Sequence record: NC_047815.1 | DNA: 64,000 nucleotides | Direction: 5' to 3' (one strand) | Shown here: positions 1 to 9,417 of the stretch, piece by piece | Layout of the letters: every line of letters starts with the position of its first letter | How positions within the stretch are numbered: position 1 is the first letter of the stretch | Translations under genes and position numbers: made by a program | Notes under the pieces: generated by a model | What the model was told of the DNA's origin: nothing | The model's database searches: none | Seen by the model: only the letters and a program-made list of their open reading frames with translations

Positions 1-586
1 AGGCTATCAGGTAGTTGCCGCTGTGTTGCGTGTTGGTGAGAATCACGTTGCGACTGTTATCTCAAGCCTGCTTGACCTTGGCATTATCAGCTACGAAGCC
101 GCTAATCATACCGTGATCATTCCTGGTCTGAGTGTAGGCACAATGCGTACAGCTATTCTTGATTCAGTCACAACTGTTGAGAACAGCCTGATTCAACGTA
201 GCGTTATGTTGCACCTCGCAATCGCAGACGCATTCCCTGAGCTGGCAAACTTTGTTGGTAAGTACAATCTTGCTGCTAACCTGCATGAAGCCGCGCACTT
301 CGGTTCACACTATCAATCAGATGATTATGCATATCTGGCGGACAGCGAATCGATGGAGAAAGCACTCAAGCGTTTGGTCGCTCGTGACTTCCCTGAGTTT
401 GCTGATCAGTATGATGAGATCTCACGTCAGGCGGCATACATTGATGACCTGTTAAGTCTCGATGAAAACTTGTACCCTGTCGCTTGCTCAGTGCGTGCTG
501 TATCAGAGCAACAGCCCGTTGAATTGTGGGATGTTACTGTACCCGCCACCAGCGCTGTTGTTACTAACGGCTTTGTCAGTCATAAC
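1..586 (+). mobile_element. Intein, C-terminal part, in recA
   Basis: Blocks F/G VELWDVTVPATSAVVTNGFVSHN end at 586 with His-Asn, followed by Ser+1 (TCA 587-589). SSLLDLGIIS resembles LAGLIDADG-intein block H. Confidence 0.9.
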
Positions 587-1972: not shown

Positions 1973-2998
1973 ATGTCTGATAAGCCTTGGCACTTAGAAA
2001 TTCACGATTCAACCATCAGCAACAACTTTTCTATCGGCATGAGTCGCAAGCATATGACCGCTGCGTTTGAAAAGTACATCGAAAAGAATAGTGGTCAAAT
2101 TCCATTTTACGCTTTCTCGTTTGAGGAGTTCTGTCGCTGGGCTGGCGATAGACATGTGCCTTGGAAAGATAAACCTGTACGCGCTAGTGTTATGCATAGC
2201 GTGAATCTTATCTACGGACAATTTCTCTGGTCCTTTACCAAAGGTTGTTTCTCACCTGAGAAAGGGCTGCTTGAGTATTTAATAAACAGTGAACTTCCTA
2301 AGACGTTTCCTGTCTCTATGTTGCGTCGTCTGCCTCACTGGTCACAATGGATAAACACAAATCTATGTGTTGATTACACCTCCTCTGGTACAATGTATTC
2401 CATCGAGAGTACAGGATTTTGGGCAACCTACTGCATGATTGAGGGACGCACGAATCTTTCTCTTTTCGGTCTAGGTCTGTTCAAGAATGGAGAGCAAGAC
2501 AGAGAGATTATGAATGTTCAGGCCATGTTTGAGATTGAAGAAGATCGACCAATCGAAGACACTCTGGAAACATTCATGTTTCTTATGGGAAGCGAAGGTA
2601 GATACGGTGTTGAGGAGACGCACCCTGATTACGAAAATATTCGTGATGCTATCATTGCTTGGGTAAAGCAAGCGGCCAACATCATTCTGTTTGTATCGAG
2701 TCAGGTAGATGACCTATACAAAGGCGGTGTCAAGCAAGTACAACCTCGACGTAAAGGTAAAAGCTATAAACTTATGCCTGTCGCTAAAGAGCGTAATTGG
2801 TCTGTCGGCACAGAGTTCCTGAACCCTATACGCGAGTATGAAAAAACTATAGGCACCATGACGTCTATTCAAAAGCGTGCTGCCCATATTCGTCGCGGTC
2901 ACTACCATAGTTTCTGGCGTGGACCTCGCGATGGACAACGTGAATTATTCAGCAAATGGTTGCCACCAACAGTTGTCAGAGGAACTTTAGAAACATAA
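1973..2998 (+). CDS. AcrVA2/FinQ-family protein
   Basis: Colinear motifs LP..FP.S....LP.W, GFWA.Y..IE, WSVG and C-terminal HIRRGHYHSFWRGP...KWLPPTVV match AcrVA2 as recalled; GAGGA SD. Confidence 0.7.
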   Translation: MSDKPWHLEIHDSTISNNFSIGMSRKHMTAAFEKYIEKNSGQIPFYAFSFEEFCRWAGDRHVPWKDKPVRASVMHSVNLIYGQFLWSFTKGCFSPEKGLLEYLINSELPKTFPVSMLRRLPHWSQWINTNLCVDYTSSGTMYSIESTGFWATYCMIEGRTNLSLFGLGLFKNGEQDREIMNVQAMFEIEEDRPIEDTLETFMFLMGSEGRYGVEETHPDYENIRDAIIAWVKQAANIILFVSSQVDDLYKGGVKQVQPRRKGKSYKLMPVAKERNWSVGTEFLNPIREYEKTIGTMTSIQKRAAHIRRGHYHSFWRGPRDGQRELFSKWLPPTVVRGTLET

Positions 2999-3043: not shown

Positions 3044-3349
3044 GTGCTGACGCTGATTATTAATTGGGGAATTATTTTTATGTGTGTTCGATCTCTGGTG
3101 AAACTGGCATACTGCGAACGCCGCGCCGAGTGGTGTAAGCCTTATGTTAATGCATCCCTGTCTCAAACCAAGACAGCCCAGAAGGTAGACTGTTCTGCAT
3201 TTACAACAGCTATGAAGGGTTGTCGTCCTGTTCAACTATCTCCCAATCTCGTCAACTTTTATCGTGAAAACGAATTGGTTGGACAGACTGTATGGAAAGA
3301 AGAAGAAGGCGATAGTGAATTGCAGTTCCGTCTGCTCACAGCACATTAG
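3044..3349 (+). CDS. Small hypothetical protein, hydrophobic N-terminus
   Basis: ORF track; alternative ATG at 3080. Confidence 0.6.
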   Translation: MLTLIINWGIIFMCVRSLVKLAYCERRAEWCKPYVNASLSQTKTAQKVDCSAFTTAMKGCRPVQLSPNLVNFYRENELVGQTVWKEEEGDSELQFRLLTAH

Positions 3350-3437
3350 TACATAGGGCACTTGAGATTATTCTCGGTGCCCTTTCTCTTTTGTATGCTA
3401 ATTTCGATGACAAGACACAACCACAACGGAGAATGTC

Positions 3438-4104: not shown

Positions 4105-5562
4105 ATGAGCATCATTTCATTATCGGCCACAGCCGCACAGAAGGACGCTGCCGTCTATTTGTTTGGCTCTAAAGGGCACAGCATTATCGCTGCTATTGAA
4201 GCACTGGCTAAGTCCAAAGAACTCAACACTCCTCATCTGAATGGTCTGATGGCCATGCTGAAAGAAGCGGAAGATGATGAGATCATCAAGTTCAAAAACA
4301 GCGCTGGTGGCAAAAAGTCTATTGAGGCTGCAAAGCAGTTAGTTACGGCCAAGACTCTGGTAACCAGCATCAAGGCGCTGCGTGCTGTTAAGGTTCCGTC
4401 TAAGTGGATTCCTAATCACGATGACGTCAAGAACCAAGCTGTATCTGAAACCGTTGTGCATCGCGCTACTGGTCGCGGTACTCGTCCGAAGAAAGCTGAA
4501 CAGATGGTAAATCCTCAGGCACCTGAAGCAGAGGAGATTGATGACTACGCACAGTACGCAGACATTAAAAATCTAGCTGCCAAAGTTCAGGACGCTCTCG
4601 AAGAAGATCATGAGATGGACGTCAAGATTACTGGTCATGCTGCGAAAGGTAAAGGTTCTTCTGCATATATGGAGGTTAAACAAGGGCGTCGTGTATTAGG
4701 TTCAATCTTTGTTCCTTACGCCGGTCGTCAAGTCCGCAGTGGTGAGTGGTTTAACGCGTCCGAAATCACGATGCAAGTCGAAAGTTTCGAACACAACGAC
4801 ATGGTTTATGATAAGATGAAGGGCTTAGGTCTTATCGACGTTGCTGGGTCAATCGCTGACAAGTTTGCAGAGCTTGCAGAGAAAGCTAACAAAGGTCCAG
4901 ATACAACTTCTCGTCGTAAAGATGGTGCTCGTATGGAAGCAGTAACCAGCGATTACCCTAACAGTTTTAGAATTGACCCAGAGCGTAACCCTGGATTAAT
5001 TGCTAAGATTGATCCTTACTTTAATAAAATTTCAGGCAAGAAAAACAGATCTGTTCAAGCCCGAGGTATTGTCAACTTCTCGTTTGCTACCAAACGTGAT
5101 ATGAACAGCGTGATTAAACAGTTTGACCTGACTTTGAACGCTATCGGTGATGCATTCTATCACCCACCAAGAGTTGTTGGCAGCGTAGTGCCTAGTAAAA
5201 CTGCGGCCAAACGCACTACGACAAATTCAGACCTGTTTACGATCGGTAACGGTGCTACTACCGTTAAATCTGTCAAGCGTGTCAATAACGGTGGCATTGA
5301 AATTCAATTCGCTGGTCCGAAGCCTTCATCAGTTCTCGTCAGTACAGAAGATGAATGGTTAGTAGTTGAGAACAAGCGTGGCGGTCAGAGTGGTTGGGAC
5401 GTTGCTGCGGAATTCTTGAACAAAGCAATCGTTGCCGCAGGTTCTTCTGTTGTTGAGCAGTCAGACCAAGCGGGCTATGAAGGATTTAAGCTGCCTAATG
5501 ATGCGGAAGTTGATAAGGTTATTGCTTATCTCGCCAAACTTAAAATCAACGCAAAAAAGTAA
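4105..5562 (+). CDS. Modular hypothetical protein (485 aa); probable -1 frameshift extends it to 5942
   Basis: GAGGA SD before ATG 4105; ends GCA AAA AAG TAA. Confidence 0.8.
   Translation: MSIISLSATAAQKDAAVYLFGSKGHSIIAAIEALAKSKELNTPHLNGLMAMLKEAEDDEIIKFKNSAGGKKSIEAAKQLVTAKTLVTSIKALRAVKVPSKWIPNHDDVKNQAVSETVVHRATGRGTRPKKAEQMVNPQAPEAEEIDDYAQYADIKNLAAKVQDALEEDHEMDVKITGHAAKGKGSSAYMEVKQGRRVLGSIFVPYAGRQVRSGEWFNASEITMQVESFEHNDMVYDKMKGLGLIDVAGSIADKFAELAEKANKGPDTTSRRKDGARMEAVTSDYPNSFRIDPERNPGLIAKIDPYFNKISGKKNRSVQARGIVNFSFATKRDMNSVIKQFDLTLNAIGDAFYHPPRVVGSVVPSKTAAKRTTTNSDLFTIGNGATTVKSVKRVNNGGIEIQFAGPKPSSVLVSTEDEWLVVENKRGGQSGWDVAAEFLNKAIVAAGSSVVEQSDQAGYEGFKLPNDAEVDKVIAYLAKLKINAKK
5553..5562 (+). other. 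Candidate -1 programmed frameshift site A_AAA_AAG then TAA
   Basis: Heptamer in the correct phase; -1 frame open from 5544 to 5942. Confidence 0.6.
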
Positions 5563-5942
5563 CAAGCGAGCCTGAGTCAACAACGACAAACAAATCTACA
5601 GCAACGCTGGTGGATGAGTTGTCCGAGATGCAGCCTCGCAAGTTCAGTAAGCTGAATAGCTTTGATCGATATAGCTACATGAAGGCACTGCGTGATATGG
5701 TGCACGATGCCATGCCTGCTGATGCCGACATACAAGTTGTATTGACTGACAACGATACGCGTCTGACGATCAGTAATGGTCGTCGCAAGACCTATCAGTT
5801 CTACATCAAAGGCAATAGCTGGATCATGTACGATCAGTCTGACAAATCCGAATCAAAGATGGGTGATTCCATCGATGTTTCTGAATTGATTGAGGTTGCA
5901 CATGAAACAGCAAACACCTCAAGTCTAATCAAGTTCAAATAA
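5559..5942 (+). CDS. Frameshift extension / downstream ORF (track 5610..5942)
   Basis: No convincing SD/ATG; reads VTSEPESTTTNKSTATLVDELSEM...; resembles an internal domain of the upstream ORF. Confidence 0.65.
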   Translation, partial: VTSEPESTTTNKSTATLVDELSEMQPRKFSKLNSFDRYSYMKALRDMVHDAMPADADIQVVLTDNDTRLTISNGRRKTYQFYIKGNSWIMYDQSDKSESKMGDSIDVSELIEVAHETANTSSLIKFK

Positions 5943-5945
5943 CCA

Positions 5946-5969
5946 AAAGGGTACCTTCGGGTGCCCTTT
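5946..5969 (+). terminator. Intrinsic terminator
   Basis: AAAGGGTACC-TTCG-GGTGCCCTTT. Confidence 0.75.
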
Positions 5970-6226
5970 CACCGTTCTGTAACAAAATTTACAATCCAAT
6001 CATAAATAACCTATACAGGCCCGTCAGCCGAGTTGTGTCGTGTTTAACTCACAAGTTACCCTGCCTGTATCGCCACTATTGGTATAACTCTAGTACAGTT
6101 CGGTACGTCCGAAATCGATCTGAATCTTTCCTCTTGTTTTATCGTTAATTAAGCAGAGTAGGCAAGCTACCTACACACACTTATCTAGGCAAATTTGCTA
6201 TCGGTTAACACCAAGAGGAATATTCC

Positions 6227-8041
6227 ATGATCGAAGTAAACAGTTTTGATGAACTTCGCAAAACAGCTCCAAGCAAAGCTGGTGACCTTGCGATTTTGAA
6301 ACGCTACTACGACAAAGACAGCAAGTTCCGTGGCGGCGGTTGGTTCATCGGCTTCCCACAAACAAACGTACCTGCTGATGACGGTGGTATCAATGCCGTT
6401 GATGCAAACAAGAAATTCTTTTGGCAGCGCGTTGTAAACGATCCAGAAGAGATTAACATCATGCACTTCGGCGGCAAGTGCGATGGCAAGACCGATGACT
6501 CAGACGCATTCCGTCGCAACTTCATGTGGGTATACAACATGAAAGACGGCAGTGATACCTTAGGCGTTAAATTGCCTTCAGGTACCACTATGCTCAAGCC
6601 TATGGACTTTACTGATCTCGGTGAAGTACCTGTGTTCGCTGTGTATGGTGACACGCGCTGTACCAAAGGCTGGCGACCACGCGTCAAGATTATCAGTGAC
6701 AAGTCCGACCAAAACGTGTTCAAAGTAAAAGCGCGTCGCATGATCATTCAAGGCATCAACTGGAATGGTCAGTGTACTGCTGACACTACAAAGAACACGG
6801 GCGCCATTCCTCCTGAACTGCGTTCAAACAATCAGATCTTTTTTGAAAACATTTGCACCATGGGTCAATACATTGGTGTTCACTGTTTCCGTGCTGAGAA
6901 CAACGGTGGCTCCGCATTGAAGTTTCAAGACACCATTGATACTTCAATCACAGAGATCTACGGCTCTAAAAGCTATGGCGCCGTGATTGAAGCCAAGTGG
7001 TCAAACACAGTGCAAGCAGGTTGGAATCACTCTACTGCTGTGCGTCTTGAGAACGGTAACTTCCAGTACGGCTACGGTCCTGCTGTGCTTGATATGCCGC
7101 GCATGACTCAGGCATTCATGAAGAACATCTGGATTGAGCACACTCGCTTCCCAGGTAACTTGAATGATGGTCAGTGGGTATTCGAAGGTAACTCTATCGA
7201 GAGTTCTGACAATCCACTTAACCTTGCTAACACTCGTTGCGTTATCAACGGCTTCTACTTCCAGGGTAAAGGTACCATGAATCTGGAACGTGCTAAGAGC
7301 CCTGATAACTGGTTGAGTGGTTACGAGCGTGGTAACATTCGCACAGAGACCTATGGTATCATCATGACCGATAGCTGTTTCCGTGCTGGCTACTACACTG
7401 GCTACAAGATTACGAACAACACTGACCAAGACAAGTGGTTCTACATCGGCAGTTTCTCTTTCCCTAAAATGAATCAGATCTGGGAGATTGAACTGTTGGG
7501 TAAAGCTGGTGGCACCGTACCAAATGCGAAAAGCCAACAGCCTGTCGATATGACTGGTATGGGTCGTCGCGTTATCACGATGCAGCGTTGCAACACTCCT
7601 AACAAGAAAGTGTATGCTGATATGCGTCAAGAAGGCACAGATGGTATTGCAGATGTTGTGTACCAGCGTCTGTGGGAAGATTACGGCAAAGTGTTTATTA
7701 AGCTGAAAGCCAACAGCGGTGACACTATCTTCAATCTGACAACTACTGGTCCAACTCGCTTTGAAGCTGGTCAGTGTACGTTGTTCTCCGACGGTCCATG
7801 TGAATGTGTTGACGATCTGCTGACTGAAATGACAACCAGCGTAGAGAAGAATCAGAAAGACTATGCTCGTCCTCAAAATCGTTTCAGTCTCCACAATGGT
7901 CTTGCTGGCATCGGCGCAAACGAACAGGGTGTGCTGACCATGCAGACGGCAGAAGGTAAGGCGCCGAAAGATCTTACCAAACCAGCGGGATATACCACTA
8001 TCAACATTAACGGCGTTGATCGTGTGATCCCATACTTCTAA
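6227..8041 (+). CDS. AmsF/WceF-like tailspike-fold (beta-helix) glycan-binding/depolymerase protein
   Basis: VNSFDELRKT.P...GGG.F, HFGGKCDGKTDDSDAF (pectate-lyase-3-like N-terminal motif), WNHSTA, MPR.TQ, IWIEHT; no signal peptide. Confidence 0.6.
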   Translation: MIEVNSFDELRKTAPSKAGDLAILKRYYDKDSKFRGGGWFIGFPQTNVPADDGGINAVDANKKFFWQRVVNDPEEINIMHFGGKCDGKTDDSDAFRRNFMWVYNMKDGSDTLGVKLPSGTTMLKPMDFTDLGEVPVFAVYGDTRCTKGWRPRVKIISDKSDQNVFKVKARRMIIQGINWNGQCTADTTKNTGAIPPELRSNNQIFFENICTMGQYIGVHCFRAENNGGSALKFQDTIDTSITEIYGSKSYGAVIEAKWSNTVQAGWNHSTAVRLENGNFQYGYGPAVLDMPRMTQAFMKNIWIEHTRFPGNLNDGQWVFEGNSIESSDNPLNLANTRCVINGFYFQGKGTMNLERAKSPDNWLSGYERGNIRTETYGIIMTDSCFRAGYYTGYKITNNTDQDKWFYIGSFSFPKMNQIWEIELLGKAGGTVPNAKSQQPVDMTGMGRRVITMQRCNTPNKKVYADMRQEGTDGIADVVYQRLWEDYGKVFIKLKANSGDTIFNLTTTGPTRFEAGQCTLFSDGPCECVDDLLTEMTTSVEKNQKDYARPQNRFSLHNGLAGIGANEQGVLTMQTAEGKAPKDLTKPAGYTTININGVDRVIPYF

Positions 8042-8890: not shown

Positions 8891-8919
8891 AGGCGATGGC
8901 GTTTTGCTGTCGCCTTTTT
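8891..8919 (+). terminator. Intrinsic terminator
   Basis: AGGCGATGGC-GTTTT-GCTGTCGCCT-TTTT. Confidence 0.75.
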
Positions 8920-9386: not shown

Positions 9387-9417
9387 AAGGGGCCGCTCGA
9401 AAGAGTTGGCCCTTTTT
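9387..9417 (+). terminator. Intrinsic terminator
   Basis: GGGCCGCTC-GAAA-GAGTTGGCCC-TTTTT. Confidence 0.8.

Follow-up and report, generated by a model that had tools for sequence, protein, structure and literature searches.

Gene product 241 (gp241) of Erwinia phage vB_EamM_Yoloswag is genuinely related, along almost the whole of its length, to the anti-CRISPR protein AcrVA2 and to FinQ, a plasmid protein, and comparison with AcrVA2 suggests that it probably switches off one particular gene of the host or of a competitor during translation of that gene. The occurrence of family orthologs on megaphages is already known, and the existence of targets other than Cas12a is the standing hypothesis in the field (bioRxiv 10.1101/2022.11.29.518452); the new observations made here are the synteny of the gene in three genera of jumbo phages, its faster divergence and its presence as a strain-variable cassette in phage JA13 versus phage JA11.

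The Gene and Its Surroundings

The window, a stretch of 64 kb analysed in full, is identical (100%) to positions 195701–259700 of the Yoloswag genome (KY448244/NC_047815) and reaches the genome end. Yoloswag is a lytic jumbo myovirus with a genome of 259.7 kb, which infects Erwinia amylovora. All annotated genes of the window are located on the + strand; no tRNA genes and no Rfam families at the gathering threshold were found in the 64 kb. The features around the gene of interest are as follows.

1186–1917, +, gp240 (243 aa), upstream neighbour, kept upstream of the AcrVA2-like gene in phages Y3, AD1 and Alexandra
1932–1951, +, terminator-like hairpin with a TTCG loop and a T-run in the gp240/gp241 gap (pattern scan; −13.7 kcal/mol, z −2.6)
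1962–1966, +, Shine-Dalgarno sequence GAGGA of gp241, read in the sequence 6 nt 5' of the ATG
1973–2998, +, gp241 CDS, AcrVA2/FinQ-family protein of 341 aa with an ATG start (open reading frame; GenBank/RefSeq annotation)
3044–3349, +, gp242 (101 aa), downstream ORF from the annotation, with no Pfam or PHROG match
3355–3383, +, strong terminator-like hairpin 3' of gp242, followed by a T-run (−18.6 kcal/mol, z −5.1)

In the databases gp241 (HOR66_gp240, YP_009789646.1) bears the label 'hypothetical protein', and it is contained in PHROG 6160 ('unknown function', E 4e-98). The original prediction, made from the nucleotide sequence, had described a 341-aa ORF with a series of colinear motifs, and all of them are present in the translation in the same order, namely LPKTFPVSMLRRLPHW (aa 108–123), GFWATYCMIE (aa 148–157), WSVGTEF (aa 276–282), HIRRGHYHSFWRGP (aa 305–318) and KWLPPTVV (aa 328–335); the position that it had given for the HIRRGH codons, 2885–2902, is exact. 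A tblastn search of the Yoloswag record revealed a single location for the family and no second copy, and when every ORF of the window and of the compared loci was searched with the family HMM, one gene per locus and no hidden paralogs came up.

The 45-nt gap between gp241 and gp242 contains no hairpin, so the two genes are probably co-transcribed. In the 55-nt gap 5' of gp241 a sigma-70-like site is absent, and so are both intergenic motifs that recur in the window. One of these, GGTCAAAATR, occurs six times (0.29 expected), always on the + strand (8425, 18053, 39755, 42631, 42843 and 55283), at or adjoining intergenic gaps and in several cases just 5' of sigma-70-like −35/−10 pairs; these sites are candidates for early promoters that bear an upstream element. 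The other, AATCTGTAAA, occurs four times (0.14 expected), in all cases in intergenic regions of the + strand (23055, 51777, 52444 and 52501), and near-variants lie close to 59545 and 62335; the motif is a candidate for a promoter element peculiar to the phage, perhaps one served by the sigma factor that the phage encodes. In most intergenic gaps of at least 40 nt there is a GC-rich hairpin whose loop is of the TTCG, TTAC or GAAA type and which precedes a T-run (e.g., 1932–1951, 3355–3383, 5950–5968, 8891–8915 and 9389–9414); terminator-like sites within the first 6.5 kb numbered 12 in the scan, with 5.5 expected.

The UvsX/RecA gene (836 aa; window positions 1–586, continuing upstream) carries an unannotated intein (5262–6287 of locus L001). 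The uninterrupted RecA of Dickeya phage JA11 (501 aa) aligns with UvsX residues 1–317 and 660–820, and the 342-aa insert has Cys as its first residue and His-Asn as its last two, with Ser next to it, and scores 18.3 bits with the NCBIfam intein C-terminal model, above the cutoff of 15.6; the middle part of the intein has no Pfam or PDB sequence match. The UvsX genes of phages Y3, AD1 and Alexandra (830–844 aa) probably carry the same intein.

Sequence Similarity to AcrVA2 and FinQ

A phmmer search of the PDB with gp241 alone gave AcrVA2 (7CI1) as the sole match (E 1.1e-7), with an alignment consisting of two colinear stretches, gp241 76–158 with chain residues 70–149 and gp241 276–335 with chain residues 255–316. 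A clade profile of seven sequences, composed of gp241 and six close relatives (40–56% identity) from Erwinia phages or jumbo-phage-sized contigs, matched AcrVA2 in the PDB at E 4.3e-11. In an exhaustive profile search 1.84 billion representatives were screened, and 2,105 clusters matched at E ≤ 1e-3, including 448 at E ≤ 1e-10, mostly with proteins 310–360 aa long. The family alignment derived from this search (144 sequences, with gp241 as the first row) yielded a profile whose match to AcrVA2 (E 5.5e-51) is a single stretch spanning 7–320 of the 323 chain residues. As a control for gp241 merely riding on the profile, its clade was compared with only the 64 non-jumbo members, and hhalign showed a probability of 100% and an E-value of 3.2e-43 over 275 columns (49–343); these 64 members alone match AcrVA2 at E 4.2e-48 (residues 8–319).

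FinQ was matched directly: tblastn revealed similarity to annotated finQ on 601 plasmids, 559 of them conjugative, with 26% identity over aa 86–335 (E 2e-9), an alignment that covers 73% of gp241. In a further tblastn search, gp241 also matched the published 'AcrVA2' of Shewanella phage Y11 (E 4e-6) and a gene of Moraxella phage Mcat1. Comparison of gp241 with the local Pfam, NCBIfam and PADLOC libraries gave no match, and no family model of this Pfam copy was found among the matches of the 144 family members; a Pfam label, PF26125.1, is precomputed for gp241 and its six close homologs.

The annotation of the family is inconsistent. Erwinia phage Special G gp231 (NC_041975.1, 189235–190263) is labelled 'putative protein FinQ', the homolog of Erwinia phage RisingSun (NC_042018.1, 128245–129126; Foldseek TM 0.65 to gp241) is labelled 'putative mycothiosynthase', which looks wrong, and all other family homologs compared are labelled 'hypothetical protein'.

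Predicted Structure and Conserved Residues

The AlphaFold 2 model of gp241 has a mean pLDDT of 93.1 and a pTM score of 0.91. A Foldseek search against the PDB placed three AcrVA2 chains on top (7ci2_A, 7ci1_A and 7ci1_B; E 2e-11 to 1.7e-10, probability 1.00), and the first match to another protein appeared only at E 0.037. The TM-scores between the model and the AcrVA2 chains are 0.49–0.59 over about 355 columns, with an rmsd of about 12 Å; moderate TM-scores combined with a large rmsd suggest that the domains of the two proteins may be oriented differently, and thus the domain arrangement predicted for gp241 may differ from that of AcrVA2. Sequence profiles, predicted fold and direct finQ matches agree with one another, which bears out the view of gp241 as an AcrVA2/FinQ homolog in an enterobacterial jumbo phage; both the profile and the Foldseek searches proposed for checking it recovered AcrVA2, and the similarity is not limited to the HxRRGH motif, as the profile alignment spans almost the whole length of gp241.

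The following regions of gp241 can be distinguished.

1973–2116, + (aa 1–48), N-terminal helices specific to the jumbo-phage clade; the profile alignment starts at 49
2198–2362, + (aa 76–130), first conserved block with W86, E96, P113 and P121, aligned to AcrVA2 W79 and D89
2363–2617, + (aa 131–215), variable central β-sheet region with long antiparallel strands in the model and the lowest conservation in the family
2873–2977, + (aa 301–335), conserved C-terminal block with HIRRGH (2885–2902), aligned to AcrVA2 H286, R288 and H291

Most of the conservation in the family is concentrated in the two blocks (aa 76–130 and 301–335), and aa 1–75 and 131–215 are variable. Residues 1–48, helical in the model, have no counterpart in the broad family profile; they are poorly conserved, with 66% occupancy in the other 129 family members. 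The central region (aa 131–215) is a candidate specificity surface, judging from its variability.

Experiments with AcrVA2 give a meaning to the conserved positions. Substitutions W79A and D89A weaken AcrVA2, and H286A, R288A and H291A abolish its down-regulation of mRNA and leave the binding of Cas12a intact (Marino et al., bioRxiv 10.1101/2022.11.29.518452). Residues W79, D89, H286, R288 and H291 align to gp241 W86, E96, H305, R307 and H310, as counted along the phmmer alignment with a chain numbering offset of +1 that is consistent for all five. H305, R307 and H310, as well as P121, are invariant in the family (144 of 144 members); W86 is found in 137 and P113 in 139 of the 144, and H312, W315, G317, W329 and P332 are conserved in at least 90%. 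The position of E96 is occupied by D in 97 and by E in 21 of the 144 members, gp241 having E in the place of AcrVA2 D89.

Synteny, Divergence and Presence in Other Phages

The AcrVA2-like gene occupies the same locus in Yoloswag (Yoloswagvirus), Y3 (Sasquatchvirus) and Alexandra and AD1 (Alexandravirus), where it follows genes for a sigma factor, SSB and UvsX/RecA, a small ORF and an ORF of about 240 aa belonging to the gp240 family; the small ORF 3' of UvsX is missing in Yoloswag. In phage pEa_SNUABM_5, the gene also comes after the sigma factor, SSB, UvsX and gp240 genes. Such a stable place in the replication module of three genera is unusual for an anti-defence gene. At the same time, the gp241 orthologs diverge much faster than their neighbours: the identity to the Yoloswag protein is 40% for Y3 and 27% for both AD1 and Alexandra, compared with 70–72% for SSB and 58–61% for UvsX.

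The distribution of the gene is patchy. Dickeya phages JA11 and JA29 and Yersinia phage fHe-Yen9-02 possess SSB and gave no AcrVA2-like match in tblastn searches, which rules out a 'core gene' of the wider SSB-defined clade. At the syntenic site of JA11 (Salmondvirus), the gp240-family gene is present and the AcrVA2-like ORF is absent; JA13, which belongs to the same species as JA11, has an AcrVA2-like copy elsewhere in the genome. In JA13 a cassette of 1,036 nt (L008, 4840–5875) coincides with the gene, its counterpart in JA11 is 490 nt long (L009, 2341–2830), and the flanks of the two are 98.1–99.8% identical. A search of the six-frame translation of the JA11 490 nt found no remnant of the family, and their DNA is unrelated to the JA13 cassette. 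In JA11, JA33 and JA29, the place of the cassette is taken by an unrelated sequence of about 490 nt that contains a small ORF; the site in JA13 adjoins a (p)ppGpp synthetase/hydrolase-like gene. Conflict genes typically diverge fast and are present or absent as cassettes in this manner, which argues against a housekeeping role.

The gp240-family gene is syntenic in four genera, including JA11 with no AcrVA2-like gene (coordinates 1186–1917 in the window, 7051–7812 in L002, 6906–7673 in L003 and 6887–7726 in L004), and in Y3, AD1 and Alexandra, though not in Yoloswag, the AcrVA2-like gene is directly followed by a gp240 paralog. Modelling of gp240 predicted an α/β structure (pLDDT 82.6) with weak generic matches to RecA-like domains of helicases (E at least 5.6e-3). 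An identifiable RNase or partner was considered for gp240 and rejected, as the fold matches are weak and no Walker A motif was seen; in addition, the genes on either side of the Special G homolog show no relation to gp240.

Possible Target and Mode of Action

AcrVA2 binds the nascent N-terminal peptide of Cas12a (bioRxiv 10.1101/2022.11.29.518452) and also binds mature Cas12a; it does not cleave RNA on its own, and a cellular RNase that it recruits destroys the 3' portion of the mRNA that has not been translated. Its association with ribosomes and polysomes is reported to be mediated by the C-terminal part (PMC13728456). Al-Shayeb et al. reported proteins of huge phages that cluster with AcrVA2, and Marino et al. 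counted about 1,800 orthologs, which are carried by plasmids and megaphages and for the most part occur in hosts that lack Cas12a, named FinQ as a homolog and proposed targets other than Cas12a; FinQ, encoded by conjugative plasmids, reduces the mRNA of F transfer genes (bioRxiv 10.1101/2022.11.29.518452).

To our knowledge, AcrVA2 is so far the only bacterial protein that destroys a specific mRNA after reading a nascent peptide, and we know of no target of the family other than Cas12a, apart from the old FinQ phenotype.

The reading that we favour, and hold to be somewhat more likely than not, is that gp241 is a family member that silences one gene of host defence or of a competing element co-translationally, and that this gene is not cas12a. 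By analogy with AcrVA2, the invariant C-terminal block (aa 301–335, with H305, R307 and H310) would bring gp241 to translating ribosomes, the variable parts (aa 1–75 and 131–215) would recognise the emerging N-terminal peptide of one protein, and this recognition would cause a host RNase to destroy the mRNA of that protein before its translation ends. As gp241 keeps the part linked to activity and differs in the parts possibly responsible for specificity, we infer the same mechanism directed at another protein; the most likely target would be a gene of host defence or one carried by a competing mobile element, and not Cas12a.

The host context is consistent with this. [quoted passage not shown] The expectation that Cas12a would be uncommon in such a host thus holds as far as the literature goes: the Cas12a-bearing host that a type V-A anti-CRISPR would have is not found here (PMC9004355), and the target of gp241 is considered not to be Cas12a because only type I-E and an orphan I-F array are present. 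Neither does the locus resemble that of an anti-CRISPR, as gp241 sits in a replication/recombination module, and the predicted lack of an adjacent aca regulator was confirmed, since the neighbours gp240 and gp242–gp245 had zero matches in Pfam and PHROG, including any HTH or aca-like family. Nor is the gene located on a plasmid, as finQ is, being encoded by the 259.7-kb genome of a lytic phage.

Several observations speak against the favoured explanation. gp241 has no recognisable promoter of its own and no aca-type regulator, and its stable place in the sigma factor–SSB–UvsX module is unlike typical acr loci and fits a phage-internal role as well. The moderate fold match, the first 48 residues with no equivalent in the family at large and the replacement of AcrVA2 D89 by E also count against it.

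Among the alternatives, competition in the manner of FinQ, where the gene silenced by gp241 would belong to a plasmid, prophage or satellite in the same cell or to a co-infecting phage, seems unlikely, but it has several points in its favour: FinQ, a member of the same family, lowers the mRNA of F transfer genes, gp241 matches finQ directly, the CRISPR spacers of E. amylovora, derived mainly from plasmids such as pEU30 and in few cases from phages, indicate such plasmids as the main invaders, and between JA13 and JA11 the gene behaves as an exchangeable cassette. Blocking conjugation, however, would bring little benefit to a strictly lytic jumbo phage, no candidate competitor has been pinpointed, and synteny in three genera suggests a target common to most infections. 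The E. amylovora plasmid pEU30 has an anti-CRISPR activity that lacks an explanation; this lead was dropped, as no Erwinia plasmid was among the plasmid matches listed.

It is quite unlikely, in our estimation, that the fold was kept with a different function, such that gp241 would act by binding a protein or in another way and leave mRNA unaffected. The ability of AcrVA2 to bind mature Cas12a, the identity to AcrVA2 of just about 15–20% and the undefined biochemical activity of the family are compatible with this possibility; at the same time, the residues that are required for mRNA down-regulation and dispensable for binding are the ones that are invariant in the 144 members, gp241 included.

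The recognition of a nascent Cas protein of Erwinia, e.g., Cas3 or Cas8e, would make gp241 a type I-E anti-CRISPR. The sole complete CRISPR-Cas system of the host is an active type I-E (PMC9004355), the founder of the family is an anti-CRISPR, and Shewanella phage Y11, itself a carrier of a homolog, also infects a host with a type I-E system. Nothing links gp241 to Cas proteins, though, the arrays of E. amylovora contain few spacers derived from phages, and the phages bearing orthologs infect hosts with many different defence repertoires, which leaves this explanation improbable.

A similarly slim chance is given to a phage-internal regulator or host shut-off factor, whose fold would time the decay of early phage mRNA or deplete an abundant housekeeping mRNA. 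The fixed position in the modules of Yoloswagvirus, Sasquatchvirus and Alexandravirus and the lack of an own promoter for a gene placed between terminator-like hairpins suit such a role. The gene is missing from the module of JA11 (Salmondvirus) and is strain-variable in JA13, which indicates that it is dispensable for the basic cycle, and its divergence is much faster than that of the core neighbours; the data therefore moderately disfavour this role. Finally, true inhibition of Cas12a by gp241, for which family membership and nothing else can be adduced, is strongly disfavoured and extremely unlikely, as a type V system is not described in E. amylovora (PMC9004355), most family members occur without Cas12a (bioRxiv 10.1101/2022.11.29.518452) and the presumed specificity regions are not conserved with AcrVA2.

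FinQ-like competition, a type I-E anti-CRISPR and a non-CRISPR host target are all compatible with the data. Co-translational silencing of one defence or competitor gene remains the preferred explanation of gp241. More tentatively, and with perhaps somewhat less than an even chance of being right, it may be suggested that gp241 and its syntenic orthologs from jumbo phages of Erwinia and Dickeya are co-translational silencers of a non-CRISPR host protein, and that their fast-evolving N-terminal and central regions track lineage-specific targets. If so, the jumbo-phage clade would offer a natural series for reading how peptide specificity is encoded in the family.

Comparison with Known Systems

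gp241 reveals no new kind of system, and more than 2,000 clusters of relatives exist. Nevertheless, gp241 and its orthologs can be relabelled as AcrVA2/FinQ-family proteins, and a lytic jumbo phage with a well-studied host lacking Cas12a would be a practical place to find a second target of the family; the syntenic series of orthologs (27–56% identity) and the natural pair with and without the gene, JA13 and JA11, are resources for this.

AcrVA2 of a Moraxella bovoculi prophage (7CI1, 7CI2) is similar in size (322 aa, 341 aa in gp241) and related over the full-length profile, and its three-part fold and the W, D/E and H-x-R-x-x-H residues are also found in gp241. The differences include the low identity, the first 48 residues of gp241, which are unrelated, and the variable central sheet; furthermore, acrVA2 lies in a prophage acr locus beside acrVA1, whereas gp241 is encoded by a lytic jumbo phage of a host without Cas12a. 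FinQ of IncI-type conjugative plasmids shares the conserved blocks with gp241 and acts on a non-CRISPR target, the F transfer genes, with lowered mRNA. It differs in being plasmid-borne, the N-terminal 85 residues of gp241 are not alignable with it, and a conjugation operon is unlikely to matter as a target to a lytic phage.

Shewanella phage vB_SbaS_Y11 ORF43, published as a putative AcrVA2, likewise comes from a phage whose host has a type I-E and not a type V system, but Y11 is a siphovirus with a 63-kb genome, and ORF43 is 22% identical to gp241. More distant relatives are present in Special G (gp231), RisingSun and Klebsiella and Serratia phages of about 300 kb; the family gene of Special G, a nucleus-forming phage, is located near the shell protein gene, unlike gp241. 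The closest named counterparts are the jumbo-phage orthologs of pEa_SNUABM_5, Y3, Alexandra, AD1 and JA13, at 27–56% identity to gp241.
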